DNA of 64,000 bases from Haliotis rubra (lineage: Eukaryota): the NCBI RefSeq assembly GCF_003918875.1, contig NW_025764978.1:62001-126000 (forward strand). Direction: 5' to 3'. The notes under the pieces were generated by a model, which saw only the letters and a list, made by a program, of their open reading frames with translations, made no database searches and was not told the DNA's origin. The position numbers were made by a program, and so were the translations under genes. Of this stretch, positions 49,171 through 64,000 are shown piece after piece. Within the stretch, counting starts at the first letter, position 1. Each line of letters begins with the position of its first letter.

Positions 49171-49351
49171 TCAAGCATGTAGCGTCTCATACACAGGGGG
49201 CTGCACATGGTCCATCTTCTCGTACACGTGATCCGGCTGGGTCACACTGGTTATTCCATCTCCTGCATCTCCCGTGTCATTCTCGTAGGTGGGGTTTCTC
49301 ACGGCACCAGCAGTAACGCCTGTCTTCTTCTGCTTGTTCGTAACGACCATT
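49171..49351 (-). CDS. Last exon, cytoplasmic tail ..RNPTYEN..HVYEKMDHVQPPVYETLHA*
   Basis: tttacag/ acceptor, phase matches TM exon, TGA at 49171-49173. Confidence 0.88.
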
Positions 49352-52300
49352 CTGTAAACAAGTTGTTAAAATATTAACTCGTATTCGTTGCTGACACGCA
49401 AGCAAATATTCAATTGATGAACATAATTCAATTCAATGCCAAAACTGTATTACATCCTGATTTTATAGCTCCTAATTTGATAATAACAGTGTAAACAAAA
49501 GTAATTGTATCCTAAAATTAATCCGAATTTTATGTTATATATAAAAAGTGAATTTTAACTAAATGAGTGAGTGAGTTGGCTTTTACGCCGCTTTTAGCAA
49601 TATTCGAGCAATATCACGACGGGTTTTAACTGAATGAAATACTTGACTCTTCTTTCTTGTGGGTCCCTACATTTTAACCTTAATGAAAGAATATTGGTAT
49701 CTATGGTTACCTTCTACATCTGACCAGGAGGATCACGAGAACCAGCACAACCAATCCCAGAAAGACACATACAGACACGAGCGCCCAGACAACAAGGTTC
49801 CAATCTGCAGTACAACATGACAGGTAGACATATTAACAGCCACACAAAATGTGTCACGGTGTGGTCCTGTGCATGGCAGGTAGACATATTAACAACCACA
49901 AAACCATGTGGTGGTGTGGTCCTGTGCATGGCAGGTAGACATATAACCAGCCACAAAACCATGTGGTAGTGTGGTCCTGTGCATGGCAGGTAGACATATT
50001 AACAACCACAAAACCATGTGGTGGTGTGGTCCTGTACATGGCAGGTAGACATATTAACAACCACGAAACCATGTGGTGGTGTGGTCCTGTACATGGCAGG
50101 TAGACATATTAACAACCACAAAACCATGAGGTGGTGTGGTCCTGTGCATGACAGGGAGACATATTAACAACCACAAAACCATGAGGTGGTGTGGTCCTGT
50201 GCATGACAGGTAGACATATTAACAACCACAAAACCATGTGGTGGTGTGGTCCTGTGCATGACAGGTAGACATATTAACAACCACAAAACCATGAGGTGGT
50301 GTGGTCCTGTGCATGACAGGTAGACATATTAACAACCACAAAACCATGAGGTGGTGTGGTCCTGTGCATGACAGGTAGACATATTAACAACCACAAAACC
50401 ATGAGGTGGTGTGGTCCTGTGCCTGACAGGTAGACATATTAACAACCACGAAACCATGAGATGGTGTGGTCCTGTGCATACAGCCCAGGTCACAAATCAG
50501 TTGAAGTTAAACAACGTTGGTCACATAGAGTCAGTGTTGACGGTGTTCGGCAGCTTGACTCCTGAGAGTTTCTATGACTTCCGTCCTGACACACAACGAA
50601 GCATTCGTGACACACGTGGTCTGACACACGCGAATGGGTACCCGGCGGGATAAGTCAGATAACTGTCAAGTTTCTAGCTCCTCACAGGCAGCGTGAATAA
50701 AGGCGCTTTATGAATAGCCATCATTGTCTTTATTATTATTCCAAGACAACACCGATGCCAACTTCACCACAGTGGTGGACATCACTGACCAGGGTACTGT
50801 TCAAAGCAGTATAGTCTGTTTGCAGTGAAAAACGTATCAATGAATTTTACTTTAAACAAAAAAGTAAAATCAGATAAAGTGAAATTACGATTGCGAATCC
50901 TCATAATTTTACCTTTCCAATTGAACATGTAAATCTCAGAATGTTATTCAACTTAGGATAAAAGTTGTTTGACAAACGATCATACTTACAAATCGCTATT
51001 ATTGGTTTGTATTACAAGGGGGTATGGACATTAAATGAAACACCGAGAACAAGTAGGGTTGGTTTAAGTTAACGCTCATAACGTACCGCACGTGCATTTG
51101 TTTCACTGTTCCAACTAATTCGCTTACCCCTTTGTAATACAAACCAATAATAGCGATTTGAAACCAAAGTTTTATCCTAAGTTGAATAAGATTCTGCTAC
51201 GCGCCTGCCAGGTACATAGAACCCAGCAACGCTGATGGAGCCGTGTAATAAAAAACCCTTCGTGATAACTAGCTTCATTGTTTATACCTTCATGATATAA
51301 TTCTTGAACCACGTTTCCGGCTTGACACGTGCCGTTAGCGGGATGACAGGGGGCGCCGCCAACACATTGGTCACACAGATTCCCGCAGCGCTCACCGTAG
51401 GTACCATTTGGACATGCTTTCAAAAAATACGCCATGTGTAAAGATCTCTCTGACGAATTCATTAGCCATCGTTCAAATCTGATAATCAAAACACTAAATT
51501 CATATTCATATCGTCTAGGTACTAAAAGCGATAGAGCCATATCAGATCTAGTGGACAGGTGAGCACCCGGAAGGTACAAAAACTTAAATACCTCCACCTA
51601 CATTCAGACCATTTAAGACAACATCAGGTGCACCCAACTTAAACCTAACGCTGATGGCCCGACCATTCATTGCGGTAAAGCATGGTGATGTCTCAGTCAT
51701 CTAAATACGCTAACCACCTTGGCCTGAATTATTTATCAGGTAATTTGAACGTCAGACTAGGATGTTATCTTTGTTCAAGATAAGAAAGCAACTCAACAAA
51801 AACTATAGTCGTAAATCTTTAGCTGAACATAGAACACCGTCGCAACTCTGTAGTTGAAAGGACATCACTGTCGTGATTCTGTAGCTTGATATTGTTCACT
51901 GTGTTCAGTCTATAGTTTAGTACAGATCAGTGTCGTAACTCTATAGTGTAACTCAGACTACAGTCGTGACGTACTTGTTTCGGATAGACTTCTGTCGTGT
52001 CTCTTTAGTGTAGCAGATAATGCTGTCGTAATTCTGTACTTTAACAAAGACTACTGTCGTAACTCTATAGTTTAACACAAACTGTGATTTGAGTACCGTA
52101 CACATTATACATTGCAACCAACACCCATGTTCAAGTGGACGCTAACTCAAACAGCTCGAGCGAATGCTAATAACACAGCTTTCTCACAGTGCCTTTGCTC
52201 GAGAGCTTCTGAACAATTTGTTGGAATTAAGTTTATTATAATCAGTACTATTATTTATTATAACTCCTTCATACACACCAGTAGTGCACGTGTCGCCAAT

Positions 52301-55300
52301 CCAGCCAGTGTCACACCCATCTGCACAATGGCCATCGATGTTGTCACAAGCACTTCCATTGAAGCATTTACCACATTCCTGGGTACACAGCCGACCATAC
52401 CATCCAGAGGGACACCCTGTTGAACGATACACAGATACAGCACGTTCACACTGTGTGATAGAGATACACTGCCGACCATACCACCCAGAGGGACAACCTG
52501 TTGAACGATACACACATACAGCACGTTAACACTGTGTGACAGAGATACACAGCCGACCATACCACCCAGAGGGACAACCTGTTGAATGATACACAGATAC
52601 AGCACGTTAACACTGTGTGACAGAGATACACAGCCGACCATATCACCCAGAGGGACAGCCTGTTGAACGATACACAGATACAGCACGTTAACACTGTGTG
52701 ACAGAGATACACGTCTTGATCTACAGTAAATCCACAATCAATGTTTCAATTGTCAACGTATGCCCATAGCTGATCAAAAGATATGTACTAATGTCTTAAT
52801 AATGTACTAATGTACAATATACGCTTAACTTGAGTCTACCTAATATATCATTACTTTATGTCCTGAAGACGGTAGCACGTATGCCCCCAAGAATGGATGT
52901 GTTAAAGTACACATGGGAGCGTGGCCCACAGCCTCCAGGAAGTACATCCACTGTCCCCCTGAAAGGAAATTCATTAGTCAGTTCATGGCAATATTTTGTC
53001 TTGTAGACGAAAGGTAAGTTTCAACATCGTTCTGAACGTGTACATATTTATAATGCAACTGGTATTCCGTAAATGAATGATAATTTAATTTTTCTTCAGT
53101 GACGCAAAACAGCTGATTTATTGTTAAGTGGCAGTAAATAGTGTTCATGTTTATTGTTGTGACTGTAAAATTATATACCGTAATAGTTTAACGGCAAGCG
53201 CGCTCACTGACACCCACAAACATGCATACGCATTTCAATACTGTGTCTGAATACAACGTAATGGATATTACATATGAGGCTCCATGTAACATTTACCTGT
53301 CTCCAAAAGGCCCAGCATACAGAACACCTTCGAACTCATGAACAGACAGATATGAAGTGTCGTTACGGTACACAGTGGTAACGTTCGTCTCCAAGTCCAG
53401 GGATCCCAAAGTGCTCACTGAAGTGTCGGCGTAGTACAGTCTGTGACCTGCGACAGAAGACGCTGTGTTCGTATCTGAGACAGCTGCCATACTTGACTTG
53501 ATAGATGGCAATAAACCTAAATCACTTGTCCATTATTATTCCAGCTAAATAAGGACCAGCAAGTCTTTCGTCAGAGTAACGACATCTTTGGAAGCCTGGG
53601 AGGCGTTTTGTATACTTGCCACATAAAGAAACTGTGCACACAGAAAATATAAAGATAGACAGACAGTGTCTTTATACATAAATAAAGGTGTGAACATAGC
53701 AAGTATTGGAGACAATCAAACGCGCATGCAGGTGCCAGGCGACGTGACGTCATTAATGGTGGCCTATGGACTTGCAATGTGTTACTGCACATGCAGCCTG
53801 TGCAGCTGCACACAACATGTGAAACTCAGACATTGCTGTCACTGTCGAAAGCTTGATCTTTGGTCATTCAAACGTTCACAAATTCACATGAGAATTCATA
53901 TGCACATCATGCCAAAATTAACATGTGCTCAACGTCACGAAACCATTGGAATGGTTCGAGCAGGCATGAGCCAACAACAGGTGGCAGCACATTTCAAATG
54001 TCATCGTAACACGATATCTGCATTGGTCAGTTGTTATGGAAACAGTAATGATGTCATCGACCACCCACGTTTTGGGCGTCCCCGAGTAACGACGCCAAGA
54101 CAGGACGGATGGATTCAGGTGAATAATCTCAGACACAGGTTCCAGACGGCAGTGACCACTTCCCAAACCATTCCCCAGGCCTTCAATGCTCATTTGGTAG
54201 TCTATATGCGTCGTCAATGCACTGCTGTGCTTCACGCGCATGGTGGCCATACCCGTTATTGACTTTGTCACTTCGTCGTGTGACCCCCTACTCAATTTTG
54301 AACTTCTGACGTCATCTTTACGGATATTGTTCATGTTCTTCATGAACTTCAGCTTATAAAGTGTCTACATCATTTCGTCTTTTCTGTGTTGTATTCCAAT
54401 TCTGAAGGAATTTTCTGTGTGCACAGTTTCTCTATGTTTCTGGGTCTTGCTCTGAGGATTGGACCTTTTAAAAAAAAACTTATGGTAGTAATGAATAGAT
54501 CGAGTCCAAAACACGGTTATCTGCCGCTACCCATTCTCTGCTTTGTGAATCCATCTGTTTATTATTTTAGATAATATCTTTAAAAGGACAAAAAGAACCC
54601 AACAAAACATCGAAAAGGTTACCAGCTCGAGTTATTATTATTTTCTATTTTGGTAAAAAACAAGAGTGACAAATCAGCTTCATTGACGGAGTGATTTCCT
54701 AGAGATATTTAAGATCTATTCAAAAAAAATGTGACTCTCTAATTGTCTTTTATATTCACATCCGCAGATGTTGAAAGACAAGGATTCTGGGCAAGGTTGA
54801 ATATGTAACCGTCTAAACAGCAAAACGTGTGAACTTAATTACCTTCCTTACCTTCAAACATCATACCAAAATGATGGCCATTCTTTTTGTTTAGTAGGGT
54901 GACATAGTTACTCCCGTCGTAGTTCATCATTGTGATTTTTGTGACAAATGCTAGAAACAACTTCCTGCAATGTAAAACAGTATTTCAACAGTTTGCTTTT
55001 CGCCGGTTGTCAAATCATTGTTGGCATACTTACTTTACATGGCTTTATCTTGAATCTGTTATTTAAATTTTAGTTGACTGTAATTCTTACTTGTTCCGAG
55101 TGTCGATCGCGATTCCCCATACAGGTGAATTTTCAATCGGAACCTTTGTCAGGATCTTTGTGTCCATGTTTATCTTCCACAAGGAGCTATTATCATCATC
55201 TTTCAGGTCGAACACAAAGACTGCCCTTAGTTCGGGATCAAGGGCCATTCCATATAAACCTAAAAAGTTGAACCAAAATAGTACTTCTTTAAATACAATC

Positions 55301-56981
55301 ACAAAAACGATACACACATCTGCTGATCTGAAGGGTGATCTCTATCAACATCACAGTGTTTACCTCAGTAATTTAAGATGGCTTCTTTGGTGGGTACGTG
55401 TTGGTGAGTTTATTTGTTTTAAGTTCGTAATTATCAATTTACATCCTTACTTCTGGAGACGTTCACCCACGTTTCGTAGTCTTCTCCTGAAGACTTGACC
55501 CTACAAACAGATTTGAGAACAAAGTCGGACCAGTAGACGTAGTCGTAGACCGGGTCGTATACAGGACATCTGGGGTTGGGGGTGTGGATCGGGAGAACAC
55601 TGCAGCTGGACCTGCCATCCAGGGTGCATCGATACACGCTCCCGTTGACATCTACACCTGCACCGCTGTCTGTGATAAACATTATCTTTTCTGTCGCTGA
55701 AAATGAAGAAATATCTATTATAATTCTTAAATCGACGCCCTTTGGGGCAATTAGTTATTTCGCCGTAATCAGCGACATGGATATTAACTTCAGATATAAG
55801 TACAAGGCTAAGTTCGTATATCTTGGCTGGCTGTTTAGGTCCCTATCATCACATTTCGTCAAAAACTACATGCGAGTTGAACACTATCTCTATCTGCATA
55901 GGCGGAGCCAGTTATCTTCAAAGGGGGTTGGGGGTGGTAGGGGGTTGGAGGGGTGTGTGTGTGTGTGTGTGGGTGCGTGTGCCAAAACCAGTTTTAAACA
56001 GCAATGTTTTTATATTCGTTACCCTAATTCTTATTTCAATCATCATTTTTTTTTGCATGGACCTAATATCAGGATGTACCTTCATTTACATTATCTCCAG
56101 GGAAAAGGTTCCTATAGAACCAGCCTATACTGTACCTGTAGTATATACATTCACTGTGTAAATAATACCACGGAGATAATTCTGGTGTGGCTGTCTCTAT
56201 CACAGCAAATATATTGATATGCATACATATATATTCAGAGTGACAATAATAGGACTGTACAGTGTATTTGTTAACAAACAGTCACACCTGATTAACATAA
56301 GGAAGTTTGGATTAAATAGGTGAGTCATAATATTTCCATATCATAGATTCGCAGTGTAGGCTATGATAGGTGGGTTATGTGGCATTGTGATGTAGGTTTC
56401 GACTGGGTTCATGTTAGGCTTTATGAAGAAAGTTCAGTAATGTATGGGAAATACGACTTGTTTGTCTGGAGCTACGTCTTTGCGATTGAATATTTACAAC
56501 AATTACATAGAGGTCCTTATTATATAACACTCCCTTGCTTTAACCTGAATTGTGTCATATTGTTACATTCCAAATTATGTGTTGTCTCCAACAAATATAT
56601 GCCAGGAACCGATGGAAGGATGGACAGATCGGATGGCATAAATGCTGCGCCATGCTGGATGCAGGTGAACTAGACAAATTGGTCCTAAATATACCGTGAC
56701 AGTGATTCCCGACACACAGAGCAATGTCGCATCTGTATCACTACCTCCTAGAAACGTGGGATGTGGGCAAAGCAGGTCAAGACGCGTCACATATTCACCT
56801 GACGAGCTTTGGGTACCGAGGAACCATGGTGCATGGAGTATCTACAAAGGTTCTACTGCTACTTACAACATAGCCCAGAGACATAAAAGTACTGAAGTAC
56901 CAACTTACCATTATTAGATTCAGCGGCAGCGATCAGGAGTGCAAGGGCACACAAGACGAAGACAAGTGTAGTGTCCGCCAT
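49171..56981 (-). CDS. Type-I membrane receptor: signal peptide, YWTD-like beta-propeller, 2 MEGF-type EGF repeats, TM, NPxY/ITAM-like tail (11 exons; one internal TAA)
   Basis: Exons 56981-56909, 55696-55451, 55259-55091, 54964-54852, 53447-53297, 52958-52855, 52416-52279, 51416-51288, 50815-50768, 49804-49711 and 49351-49171; all GT-AG with matching phases; 1446 nt = 482 codons; codon 285 is TAA. Confidence 0.85.
49711..49804 (-). CDS. Transmembrane exon DWNLVVWALVSVCVFLGLVVLVLVILLVRCRR
   Basis: ctgcag/ acceptor and /gtaacc donor; ~25 hydrophobic residues then basic stop-transfer. Confidence 0.9.
49814..50480. repeat. 55-bp minisatellite, ~12 copies, intronic and abutting the TM-exon acceptor
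   Basis: gtggtcctgt recurs every 55 nt from 49861 to 50466. Confidence 0.96.
51288..52416 (-). CDS. Exons 7-8, MEGF10/SCARF-type EGF repeats (second lacks its last two Cys)
   Basis: CPSGWYGRLCTQECGKCFNGSACDNIDGHCADGCDTGWIGDTC; CPNGTYGERCGNLCDQCVGGAPCHPANGTCQAG. Confidence 0.88.
52386..52712. repeat. 81-bp tandem repeat x4 containing a 3' splice site and the EGF exon start
   Basis: ccgacca at 52391, 52472, 52553 and 52634. Confidence 0.95.
52855..55696 (-). CDS. Exons 2-6, LDLR-class-B/YWTD-like beta-propeller
   Basis: MFITD, YDPVYDYVYWSD, GMALDPELRAVFVFD, GIAIDTRNKKLFLA, MNYDGSN, RLYYAD. Confidence 0.85.
53611..54445 (+). mobile_element. Internally deleted Tc1 element with TIRs, intronic
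   Basis: TIR core agaaactgtgcacacagaaaat at ~53627 and inverted at ~54410-54431; MPKLTCAQRHETIGM..GRPRVTT fused in frame to GGHTRY*. Confidence 0.9.
56909..56981 (-). CDS. Exon 1, signal peptide MADTTLVFVLCALALLIAAAESNN
   Basis: atcATGg Kozak-like context, hydrophobic core, /gtaagt donor. Confidence 0.85.
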
Positions 56982-56987
56982 GATGTC

Positions 56988-57063
56988 ACACCAGTATATC
57001 TACCCACACCAGTATATCTACCCACACCAGTATATCTACCCACACCAGTATATCTACACACCC
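56988..57063. repeat. 18-bp tandem repeat x4 immediately upstream of the receptor ATG
   Basis: cacaccagtatatctacc repeated. Confidence 0.92.
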
Positions 57064-57469
57064 CAGCCGGGAACACGGGTATTTCAACTCTGCTCAACTA
57101 TTTGTGTACGAGGAAGTATATTACGCTTCAGCACAACTTGCTTTAGGTGACAGGGTGACAAAACCTGTCGGGTTGCCAGTAAGGCTATTAATGCATGTCA
57201 TGCCTGTCACATCAGTAATGTATGCATGTGTCATTGTGAGGTTTGAACAGTATGCGATATAAGTCATATCAACTTGCACTGATGTGTGCAGTGTGTTGAG
57301 GAGAAAGGCAACCATGCCGACGTCTTCGCTTGGATGACGTCTGGCTGGTCTAGTAAGTGAAACAGAAGATTTTCTGGTTGCTGGTAAGGACCAGTCACTT
57401 TCTTCTCAATATGTGATTTATAATGTAAATATGAAATGTAGATGATGTAAAGATTTCCACGAGTCTGTC

Positions 57470-62714: not shown

Positions 62715-63312
62715 TCGGATATTGAGATGGACAGAGGTCGGGGTGCTAGTGTCTCTGAAACTGAGAAGGAAAGAGATCGGGGTGCTGGTGTCTCCAATAC
62801 TGAGAAGGAAAGAGATCAGGGTGCTGGTGTCTCTGAAACTGAGAAGGAAAGAGATCGGGATGCTGGTATCTCCGAAACTGAGGAGGGAAGAGGTCAGGGT
62901 GCTGGTGTTTCCGAACCTGGGTGCTGGTGTCTGGTGGGAAACTGAAAAGGAAAGAAGTCGGGGTGCTGGTGTCTCCGAAACTGAGCAGGAAAGTGGTCAG
63001 GATGCTGGTGTCTCGAAAACTGTGGACAGAGGTCGGGGTGCTGGTGTCTCGGAAACTGAGGTGGAAAGAGGTCGGGGTGCTGGTGTCTCCGAAACTGAGG
63101 AGGAAAGAGGTCGGGGTGCTGGTGTCTCCGATACTGAGAAGGAAAGAGGTCGGGGTGCTGGTGTCTCCGAACCTGAGAAGGAAAGTGGTCAGGATGCTGG
63201 TGTCTCGAAAACTGTGGACAGAGGTCGGGGTGCTGGTGTCTCTGAAACTGAGAAGGAAAGACGTCGGCGTGCTGGTGTCGTGGAGACTGAGGTGGACAGA
63301 GGTCGGGGTGCT
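62715..63312. repeat. 39-bp minisatellite (13-codon unit) adjoining purine-skewed low-complexity sequence to the window end
   Basis: Unit gaggtcggggtgctggtgtctccgaaactgagaaggaaa; reads ETEKERGRGAGVS on + and ETPAPRPLSFSVS on -. Confidence 0.92.
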
Positions 63313-64000
63313 TGTTCAGCTGGTAAAAGGAAAATATACAAGGCTTTTGGAGAGGAGGAGGGAGAATGTTTTGGTTGTGGAAGAAAATGGAGGAGAGATC
63401 AAAATACTATTGGAGGTGGAGATAGAGGAGACATTGATGAGGAAATTGGAGGAGAAGACGTTGTTGATGGCAAGCAGGGAGGAAGGTGGAAGGGATTTCA
63501 GTATATGACTGGAGATGGCGAAAGATCTGTTCTTCGTGGAGGAAGAGAAAGACGAGACAAAGATCTCACTGTTGATGGAAAATGGGGGAGAATATGAGAG
63601 GTTTGGATCAATATTGGGAGAGAGATAGAGTACATCCTTGGAGGTGGAGGAGGCGCTGTTGTCGGTGGAGGAAGAGAAAGAGGGTTCAGAGATGGCTCTG
63701 TTGGTGAAAAACAGGGAGAATATGGTGATGGCGGTGGTAAAATATGGAAGAAATACCATTACAACACTGAAGGAATTGATACAGGAAACGATGACGTTTG
63801 CGGAGCAATAGAGGTGGTACTCGGAGATGGTGCTGTGTTGGGAATGCAGGGAGAATGTGATAGCAGTGAAGACGAAAGGAGAGGAGATCGTTGTACTGGA
63901 GGAAGAGAAGGAGATGGCACTGTCAAAACAGCGCAGCCACAATACGTTGATGGTGGCAGAATTCGGACAGGAGATTACATCAAAAGAGAGAGAATTACGA

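Follow-up and report, generated by a model that had tools for sequence, protein, structure and literature searches.

LOC124280664 of the blacklip abalone, a probable stop-interrupted copy of a Haliotis-only propeller-EGF receptor family

The described protein whose layout comes nearest to that of the abalone family considered here is Cueball (Drosophila CG12086, UniProt Q95RU0; arthropod clusters), a fly precedent with type I topology, a signal peptide, one YWTD (LDLR class B) propeller, EGF-like domains, a transmembrane (TM) segment and a short sorting tail, with no LDLa repeats. One paper presents Cueball as an EGF-like protein that is bound to the membrane and carries LDLR repeats (PMC4321038), and another as a clathrin-adaptor cargo, most like LRPs, with an acidic dileucine-type signal in its tail (PMC3127973). 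In the LDLR family (LDLR, LRP4/5/6, megalin) a six-bladed YWTD propeller is preceded by LA (LDLa, class A) repeats and a cbEGF pair and directly followed by an EGF, and the protein crosses the membrane once and has NPxY in its tail. Receptors of the CED-1/Draper/MEGF10-11/PEAR1 type carry membrane-proximal MEGF/PEAR1-type EGFs, a single TM and NPxY followed by YxxL; CED-1, Draper and MEGF10 have an EMI domain, about 15 or more EGFs and YxxL/I twice. Finally, the gastropod CUB/SRCR/Ig-YWTD mosaics (Pomacea 'LRP4-like' P0159, Lymnaea P0160, Babylonia P0161; 800-1300 aa) combine propellers with other modules and are LDLa-free. A previous sequence-only reading of the locus had considered LDLa repeats the normal company of LDLR-family propellers; LDLa-free propellers are not unusual, as Cueball, pro-EGF, nidogen and these gastropod proteins illustrate.

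The window analysed is a 64,000-nt stretch of the Haliotis rubra (blacklip abalone) genome, in contig QXJH01001077.1, and the locus, on the minus strand of the window, corresponds to LOC124280664. The gene model comprises 10 exons and 465 codons, with canonical GT-AG sites and in-phase splicing, and the H. asinina ortholog has the same 10-exon structure. This structure and the translation of exons 1-6, which is 100% identical to RefSeq XP_046572611.1 (P0154; 284 aa), replace the 11 exons and 482 codons proposed earlier. Exon 1 (56909..56981; 73 nt, ending in phase 1) contains the start codon and the signal peptide (MADTT...AAAESNN), with the hydrophobic leader MADTTLVFVLCALALLIAAAES; it is identical to the N-terminus of P0154, has an orthologous exon in H. 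asinina and joins the first propeller exon directly. Signal-peptide residues 5-21 are helical in the AF2 model. Exon 2 (55451..55696; 246 nt, phase 1-1) encodes propeller blades 1-2 (MFITD, YWSD) and is 84% identical to H. asinina P0001. The four following exons match P0154 exactly: exon 3 (55091..55259; 169 nt) covers blade 3 and the start of blade 4 (FVFD, GIAID; strands E108-E159 of the model), exon 4 (54852..54964; 113 nt) blade 4 (KLFLAF, MMNYDGS), exon 5 (53297..53447; 151 nt) blade 5 and the start of blade 6 (RLYYAD, VLYAGP), and exon 6 (52855..52958; 104 nt) the last propeller strands, ending in GTC TTC AGG ACA TAA A/gtaatg. As in the orthologs, the acceptor of exon 5 lies at 53447 and not at 53516, and exon 6 was aligned with the paralogs and H. 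asinina. The propeller motifs YWSD, GIAID and LYYAD are at 55535-55524, 55116-55102 and 53439-53425, respectively. A model with extra exons at 56747-56695 and 56194-56080 and a weak donor at 53328, in which exon 6 is skipped and a 499-aa frame stays open, was ruled out by the homologs and the exact RefSeq match.

The remaining part of the model is formed by exon 7 (52279..52416; 138 nt, phase 1-1), encoding EGF repeat 1 (CPSGWYGRLC...GCDTGWIGDTC); exon 8 (51288..51416; 129 nt, phase 1-1; orthologous exon found), encoding a truncated EGF repeat 2 (CPNGTYGERC...GTCQAG) and a short juxtamembrane linker; exon 9 (49711..49804; 94 nt), encoding the TM helix (WNLVVWALVSVCVFLGLVVLVLVILLV) and the stop-transfer sequence RCRR; and exon 10 (49171..49351), encoding the cytoplasmic tail and a TGA stop. 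The NCBI annotation divides the locus into a secreted propeller of 284 aa and a separate 163-aa gene, which ends at the same stop. An 81-bp x 4.1 tandem repeat (52384..52712, Tandem Repeats Finder) copies the exon 7 acceptor together with ~33 nt from the start of the EGF exon, and extra acceptors are present at 52497 and other sites. The signal peptide, the three propeller motifs, the TM segment and the tyrosine-motif tail announced by the sequence-only reading were thus all located on the minus strand, and the introns are in phase 1 at the signal peptide/propeller, propeller/EGF, EGF/EGF and EGF/TM borders, bearing out its phase-1 introns at every ectodomain module boundary. Its in-phase splicing held for the exon phases and failed for the open frame, which is interrupted by an in-frame TAA at codon 285; two EGF exons do exist, the second being incomplete (six Cys, ending in CQAG).

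Several boundaries coincide with ends of RNA contig pieces: both of exon 8 (X1 record 1 and X4 record 9) and the exon 10 acceptor at 49351. In X1 record 1 a gap of 94 nt between EGF2 and the tail fits exon 9 and leaves exactly the length of the TM exon, so the stalk exon of the earlier reading is absent. These contigs carry paralog-type bases, at 53415 and at 12 of the 181 positions of the tail, where they align without gaps, and they probably derive from the paralog LOC124280483. This mismatch pattern ruled them out as support for EGF-TM-tail splicing in LOC124280664, and therefore they do not demonstrate its expression.

The AF2 model of the 284-aa product (pLDDT 90.2, pTM 0.86) has 24 strands, and together with the gene model it assigns residues 25-284 to the propeller, with no other N-terminal module. 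Foldseek gave LRP6, megalin, nidogen and the LDLR YWTD-EGF pair as best matches (E 1e-12, TMq 0.73-0.79), nidogen reaching a TM of 0.81 normalised to the target, and exon 2 matched the YWTD repeats of LRP4 and LRP6 in the PDB by phmmer (4e-15 and 9e-13, respectively). The AF2 strands, the Foldseek matches and the PDB matches identify a six-bladed YWTD (LDLR class B) beta-propeller, in agreement with the fold proposed earlier. By Pfam, single exons and whole proteins gave sub-threshold matches only, for propeller and EGFs alike; the propeller is too divergent for Ldl_recept_b, scoring 12 bits where 21 are required. With its low dN/dS (0.19-0.29), the propeller gives little reason to think of an arms-race ligand head.

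After the propeller, Pfam detected no FXa_inhibition, EGF_CA or cEGF match in the EGFs. A receptor kinase of Solemya has 46-residue repeats of PEAR1 type with which the exon 7 repeat shares ~40% identity (E 8e-25), and the exon 7 repeat also matches Tie2 EGFs at 5e-5. The TM segment consists of 27 hydrophobic residues (49802-49722, minus strand), the region has a Kyte-Doolittle hydropathy of at least 2.0 in the homologs, and a helix at 369-411 appears in the AF2 model of full-length P0001, which was built from four sequences and is poor (pLDDT 47), only the TM helix being used. The tail motifs NPTY (49296-49285), YEKM (49224-49213) and YETL (49191-49180) are invariant, as NPTY/YEKM/YET[LI], in P0001, P0151, P0152, P0170 and P0172. 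The tandem tyrosines form YEKM-DHVQPPV-YETL, which has ITAM-like spacing but a Met at +3 of the first motif in every homolog. The pair is YxxM...YxxL and not a canonical ITAM (YxxL/I - x6-12 - YxxL/I), although the earlier reading had named an ITAM; YxxM is of the type known from PI3K p85 sites.

LOC124280664 is part of a tandem array in which at least four copies, ~43-65 kb apart, lie on the same strand. The paralog LOC124280448 (locus L003), 52.6 kb away, is intact (512 aa), and the full architecture is also intact in the H. asinina, H. cracherodii and H. rufescens orthologs. It runs from a signal peptide and a six-bladed YWTD propeller through PEAR1/Tie-type EGF repeats and the TM to a tail that bears NPTY, YEKM and YETL. 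Members are compact type I membrane proteins with at least two EGF repeats of 46 residues and a tail of ~60 residues. The mosaic architecture claimed for the locus is therefore real for the family, and the paralog and related-proteome check proposed with it yielded the intact paralog and the Haliotis orthologs. Exon shuffling or duplication is directly visible as well, since in LOC124280448 the 138-nt phase 1-1 EGF exon is tandemly duplicated; the number of EGF repeats is 1.7 in LOC124280664, rises to 2.7 in LOC124280448 and is about 4 in P0006 of H. rufescens. In LOC124280459, a 1-nt deletion lies in the EGF exon, and the annotation reads through it with the frame shifted. Outside Haliotis, family members were found neither by HMMER, run exhaustively with exon 2, nor by word-based searches; after three Haliotis representatives, HMMER returned only LRP-like multi-propeller and bacterial proteins, and no propeller-EGF-TM layout was present among the listed matches of up to 900 aa. 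Outside the family, the EGF-TM-tail chassis was not found combined with any other head, and literature searches brought up no description of the family. RefSeq labels its members 'uncharacterized' or 'MEGF10', one paralog being 'MEGF10 isoform X1'.

The family shares with the LDLR family the six-bladed YWTD propeller, the EGF directly after it, the single TM and the NPxY tail, TM and NPxY being conserved in orthologs and paralogs and both lying behind the TAA in LOC124280664. In contrast, it has neither LA repeats nor a cbEGF pair before the propeller, and its EGFs are not of the EGF-C/FXa_inhibition type. No Ldl_recept_a match was found in P0001, P0170, P0172 or P0154, which agrees with the absence of LDLa noted earlier, as does the direct splicing of the signal-peptide exon to the propeller. 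Judged by sequence, the family is not a core LDLR member because it has no LA repeats. With the CED-1/Draper/MEGF10-11/PEAR1 receptors it shares the EGF type, the single TM and the tail order, NPTY (the putative CED-6/GULP site) and YETL/YETI being invariant in the close family. However, a propeller occupies the place of the EMI domain, there are 2-3 EGF repeats, and the tyrosine pair is YEKM-x7-YETL. By the same kind of comparison it is not a CED-1/Draper member, because it has no EMI domain and no canonical ITAM, and the Draper/CED-1 chassis of the sequence-only reading cannot be taken as membership, NPxY being equally an LDLR-family feature. By family-HMM score, the closest propellers outside the family are those of the gastropod mosaics, and in P0159 and P0161 the C-terminal part also includes a hydrophobic, TM-like segment; unlike the family, these proteins have CUB/SRCR/Ig modules and LDLR-type EGFs, with neither PEAR1-type EGFs nor the NPTY/YEKM/YETL tail.

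As assembled and annotated by NCBI, the locus encodes a 284-aa propeller ending at the TAA (52856..52858, minus strand), where the NCBI CDS ends, and not the receptor; NCBI splits it into two genes because the frame is cut there. Codon 285 is the last full propeller codon, so that the stop falls at the boundary between the propeller and the EGF-TM-tail part; LOC124280448, LOC124280459 and H. asinina have TAT (Tyr) there. Two further changes flank the stop, one turning ATA/AAA into ACA and the other replacing G by A at donor position -1. We consider it probable that the locus is one stop-interrupted copy of the Haliotis-only family. The analysis itself shows how the gene is built, its fold and topology, the conserved motifs, the exon phases, the duplicated EGF exon of the paralog and the stop, whereas the roles of the intact members are inferred. 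LOC124280664 would give at most a secreted 284-aa propeller, its EGF-TM-tail exons being intact yet orphaned behind the stop. By an established rule, a stop with introns behind it should trigger nonsense-mediated decay, and with four exon junctions downstream of the TAA the mRNA is expected to be a target of it.

The TAA is read from the reference assembly alone, and it is conceivable, though rather unlikely, that an intact 465-aa receptor is encoded and that the TAA stems either from misassembly or from a nonsense allele private to the individual that was sequenced. The 180 downstream codons are open, with constraint not relaxed (dN/dS of the C-terminal part 0.37 against the intact paralog and 0.35 against H. 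asinina, where the N-terminal part has 0.22), which fits a very recent, polymorphic or erroneous stop; the end of exon 6 shows an odd local cluster, with three substitutions in a stretch of 7 nt; and at 52962, ~100 nt from the stop, all aligned short-read DNA contigs carry the paralog-type base instead of the reference base, so the surrounding reference has no independent confirmation. The 1-nt deletion in another copy of the same assembly could also be a long-read error. However, typical long-read errors are indels and not clustered substitutions, the TAA is present in both the assembly and RefSeq, where the locus was split with no low-quality-protein flag, and no reads with a sense codon were obtained. 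It is very unlikely that the truncated product is functional as a secreted single-propeller soluble decoy or binding protein kept beside the membrane-bound paralogs, even though it has a signal peptide, folds in AF2 as a complete closed six-blade propeller, stops exactly at a domain boundary and has a dN/dS of 0.29 against the paralog in the propeller part. Such a message should be subject to nonsense-mediated decay; the undecayed downstream exons indicate that the stop is young, too young for a soluble form to have come under selection; and searches of H. asinina, H. cracherodii and H. rufescens gave membrane-type relatives only, with no propeller-only product.

It also seems improbable that Cueball of Drosophila has its abalone counterpart in this family, which would then act in germline or membrane trafficking and not in engulfment or immunity. 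The published descriptions of Cueball point that way, as do the nearest clusters by protein-language-model features, named 'Protein cueball' (0.91, 194/256 features); the likeness is one of layout description and feature neighbours. The Cueball architecture was found in P0001, P0151 and P0172, and would be present in LOC124280664 only if the TAA were read through. But beyond Haliotis the exon 2 search led to LRP-like multi-propeller and bacterial proteins, no Cueball-like protein was among the best 150 HMMER matches, nor was cueball among the names of ten mid-sized ones, and the closest non-family propellers were the gastropod mosaics. The tails also differ, acidic dileucine-type in Cueball and NPxY with YxxM/YxxL in Haliotis, the EGFs of the abalone family are 46-residue PEAR1/Tie-type repeats, and the family, tandemly duplicated, was seen in Haliotis only.

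In the intact members of the Haliotis-only family, the propeller would be the ligand-binding head, the tail NPxY would, as in LDLR/LRP and CED-1/MEGF10, bind PTB-domain adaptors that lead to clathrin-dependent uptake, and the ITAM-spaced YxxM/YxxL pair would, once phosphorylated, recruit SH2 proteins of PI3K p85 or Syk type. There is a slight chance that they form an abalone-specific, tandemly duplicating family of haemocyte recognition or engulfment receptors, with a YWTD head, a PEAR1-type EGF stalk and a tail both endocytic (NPxY) and signalling (ITAM-spaced YxxM/YxxL), in which boundary stops, frameshifts and changes in EGF-exon copy number would shift copies between a membrane-bound state and a secreted or dead one. 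If the intact members were haemocyte uptake receptors, they would represent a lineage-specific addition to mollusc innate immunity. The main value of the analysis is corrective: a family labelled 'uncharacterized' or 'MEGF10' in RefSeq receives a clean gene model, and it becomes apparent that Pfam misses its two domains and that the H. rubra annotation divides one copy at its stop and reads another, LOC124280459, through its frame-shifting deletion. Module shuffling is also neatly illustrated by the array, in which all borders are in phase 1 and the 138-nt 1-1 EGF exon is found at several stages of tandem duplication.

The gene LOC124280664 proved to be real and its mosaic receptor architecture exists, as a variant of a known layout; the copy present in the window, however, is interrupted. 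On the minus strand, ten exons separated by GT-AG introns throughout give a spliced length of 1398 nt, that is, 465 codons plus a terminal TGA. Exon 1 (56981-56909) encodes the signal peptide, exons 2 to 5 (55696-55451, 55259-55091, 54964-54852 and 53447-53297) the propeller, exon 6 (52958-52855) the propeller end, exon 7 (52416-52279) EGF repeat 1, exon 8 (51416-51288) a truncated EGF repeat 2, exon 9 (49804-49711) the TM segment and exon 10 (49351-49171) the tail. Of what the sequence-only reading had recognized, the exons for the signal peptide and the TM segment, both EGF exons, the propeller motifs (YWSD, GIAID, LYYAD) and the tail motifs (NPTY, YEKM, YETL) were all found, as were phase-1 introns at every module border. 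However, that reading had counted 11 exons and 482 codons, including a stalk exon, and described the exons as splicing in phase, with no mention of the single in-frame TAA that exon 6 carries at codon 285 (52858-52856). The CDS of the H. asinina ortholog (P0001), rebuilt exactly from its own locus, consists of the same ten exons. Moreover, in an RNA contig from run X1, the 129 nt placed on exon 8 and the 181 nt placed on exon 10 are separated by exactly 94 letters, a spacing that equals the TM exon in length and leaves no room for a stalk. The translation ahead of the TAA is identical at every residue to RefSeq XP_046572611.1 (P0154; "uncharacterized protein LOC124280664", H. rubra, 284 aa), and a second NCBI gene call of 163 residues runs from 52641 to 49171 and shares its stop with exon 10. 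The public annotation thus splits LOC124280664 at the TAA. According to the XP_046572611.1 record, the window corresponds to positions 62001-126000 of contig QXJH01001077.1 (GCA_003918875.1), in the same orientation.

The nature of this stop was studied by comparison with related copies. In the alignment, exon 6 ends as AGG ACA TAA A|gt in the window, versus AGG ATA/AAA TAT G|gt in two paralogs of the same contig and in H. asinina, so that the window copy differs by a Tyr to stop change, one adjacent missense change and a G to A change at donor position -1. Beyond the TAA, 180 codons are open. Against the intact paralog (dS 0.095 overall), dN/dS was 0.29 for the N-terminal part and 0.37 for the C-terminal part, and against H. 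asinina the values were 0.22 and 0.35. As the codons behind the TAA are open, with a dN/dS that does not exceed that of the rest, the stop is either recent, polymorphic or an assembly error. At 52962, the closest to the TAA among the differences listed, all DNA contigs had the base of the paralog LOC124280448 and none that of the reference, so that the DNA contigs gave the reference sequence of exon 6, TAA included, no independent confirmation. RNA contigs likewise showed the paralog base at 53415 and not that of the window copy. The RNA tail piece had 12 mismatches in 181 nt, without gaps, with exon 10 of the window; the tail of LOC124280483, another H. rubra copy, has the same length as that of the window copy and 7 residue differences, and the mismatch pattern would fit LOC124280483 rather than LOC124280664. 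The RNA contigs therefore support the EGF2-TM-tail splicing for the family and not for the LOC124280664 copy. For the TAA of the window copy, which has four exon junctions behind it, nonsense-mediated decay is predicted. It is therefore more likely that this copy is a null allele or young pseudogene than that it is maintained as a secreted propeller.

Exon 2 was used as HMMER query in an exhaustive search of 1.84 billion representatives. The sole close match was P0001 (H. asinina, 457 aa, 84% identity), and more distant single-stretch matches were P0006 (H. rufescens, 526 aa) and P0103 (H. rubra, 353 aa); the remaining ones were multi-propeller LRP-like or bacterial proteins. In further word-based searches with P0001, a family profile and the EGF-TM-tail region alone, every added member of the same architecture came from Haliotis, the weaker non-Haliotis matches of the family profile corresponding to EGF repeats alone or to a propeller alone. 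Cluster look-ups gave five H. rubra copies, all of them on the same contig as the window: LOC124280664 itself, 284 aa up to its stop at codon 285; LOC124280448 (P0170, 512 aa), intact in the assembly and starting 52.6 kb away; LOC124280459, with isoforms X1-X3; LOC124280483, whose 330-aa product bears the name "MEGF10 isoform X1" and has no N-terminus in the annotation; and LOC124280680, a fragment of 122 aa. In LOC124280459, a 1-nt deletion in the EGF exon (position ~14283 of its fetched locus, L004; GGGAA-GTGG, the others having GGGAATGTGG) shifts the frame, so that in RefSeq isoforms X1-X3 the EGF, TM and tail exons are translated in the wrong frame. Among the copies examined, only LOC124280448 was seen to encode a complete receptor in the H. 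rubra assembly. The array looks like the product of birth-and-death evolution or, in part, of assembly noise. The opposite strand also carries an annotated 896-residue gene that spans >100 kb (window ~62727-64000 and beyond, L001 1-4255, and the whole of L004 and of L003, the fetched LOC124280448 locus), with LOC124280448 and LOC124280459 within its range; it may be a genuine nesting or a model chained across the repeated units of the array.

The array also shows exon duplication at several stages. Each EGF repeat corresponds to a single 138-nt exon of phase 1-1. LOC124280448 has 11 exons because this exon is present twice, the whole-exon duplication adding one EGF repeat to the protein, and a partial third copy lies in an intron (the three copies are at L003 13421-13537, 13739-13876 and 14179-14316). 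In LOC124280664, an 81-bp x 4.1 tandem repeat (52384-52712) copies the EGF-exon acceptor and the first ~33 nt.

No family member reached the Pfam cut-offs (SGL 25-30 bits, Ldl_recept_b 12-18 bits, no EGF family), which explains the "uncharacterized" labels. Nevertheless, exon 2 alone matched the PDB sequences of LRP4 (4e-15) and LRP6 (9e-13), and also those of megalin, LDLR and nidogen. The AlphaFold2 model of the 284-aa window product, obtained from a 46-row alignment of family members and propeller segments of HMMER matches, had 24 strands, a pLDDT of 90.2 and a pTM of 0.86. Foldseek matched it to the YWTD propellers of LRP6, megalin and nidogen (TM 0.81 by target) and to the LDLR YWTD-EGF pair, and the Atlas search agreed with this result. 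The six strands at the YWTD position are MFITD, YWSD, FVFD, FLAF, YYAD and LYAG. The EGF region matched the Tie2 EGF domains at 5e-5 and, without gaps, the 46-residue repeats of a Solemya velum receptor tyrosine kinase (~40% identity, E 8e-25), which carry Pfam EGF_PEAR1L. The TM segment has ~27 hydrophobic residues followed by RCRR. In the tails of the H. rubra paralogs, H. asinina, H. cracherodii and H. rufescens, RNPTY, HVYEKM and YET[LI]H are invariant and the residues between them vary (tail dN/dS ~0.45). Purifying selection was strongest on the propeller (dN/dS 0.19-0.29).

This family does not belong to the core LDLR family, as it has neither LA repeats nor the cbEGF-propeller-EGF-C unit. 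The Draper/CED-1 chassis previously proposed was also discarded, since these proteins, unlike CED-1/Draper/MEGF10, lack both an EMI domain and a canonical ITAM and have too few EGFs. The closest layout already known is that of Drosophila Cueball. In language-model feature space, the clusters lying nearest to P0001 were named "Protein cueball", and the best HMMER matches to exon 2 included no cueball-like protein. Cueball is an LRP-like protein and a cargo of a clathrin adaptor (PMC3127973). The closest propellers outside the Haliotis family belong to gastropod CUB/SRCR/Ig-propeller mosaics, indicating that LDLa-free propeller mosaics are common in gastropods. Five mosaic proteins (P0116, P0129, P0159, P0160 and P0161), those with the propellers nearest to the Haliotis family, join LDLa-free YWTD propellers to CUB, SRCR or Ig modules; by name, P0159-P0161 are gastropod (Pomacea, Lymnaea and Babylonia), and several of the five are annotated "LRP4-like".

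The domain order, type I topology and conserved motifs of the family were established, and its function can be proposed from them. NPxY is a PTB-adaptor and clathrin uptake signal in LDLR/LRP and CED-1/Draper/MEGF10, YxxM is the SH2 consensus of p85 PI3K, and a YxxL 11 residues behind another tyrosine resembles half an ITAM. In intact members, the NPxY would act as a PTB-adaptor/clathrin uptake signal and the propeller as ligand head, so that these proteins are most likely uptake receptors. The low propeller dN/dS argues for a conserved ligand over an arms-race target, and weakens the immune recognition reading proposed earlier.

Several repeats accompany the gene. Directly upstream of the start codon (56987-57066), in what is presumably the 5' UTR or promoter, there is a tandem repeat of 18 bp x 4.4 (CACACCAGTATATCTACC). 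The minisatellite at 49816-50483 (55 bp x 12.1, 94% matches) ends ~10 nt before the TM-exon acceptor; it has one stop per 165 nt, is otherwise open in all three frames, and is intronic according to the orthologs. The exon 4-5 intron contains, on the + strand, a 198-aa ORF (53666-54262). It encodes a homeodomain-like HTH (Pfam HTH_23, 1.2e-5), its depth was very high in each of the four runs, and it probably represents a piece of a high-copy DNA transposon, Tc1/mariner-like as judged from the sequence. Finally, the TM-tail intron contains a short interspersed repeat of very high abundance, an element at ~49564-49623 with a depth of ~4e4 in RNA runs and >1e6 in DNA runs and with GTGAGTGAGT-type flanks in loose ends.
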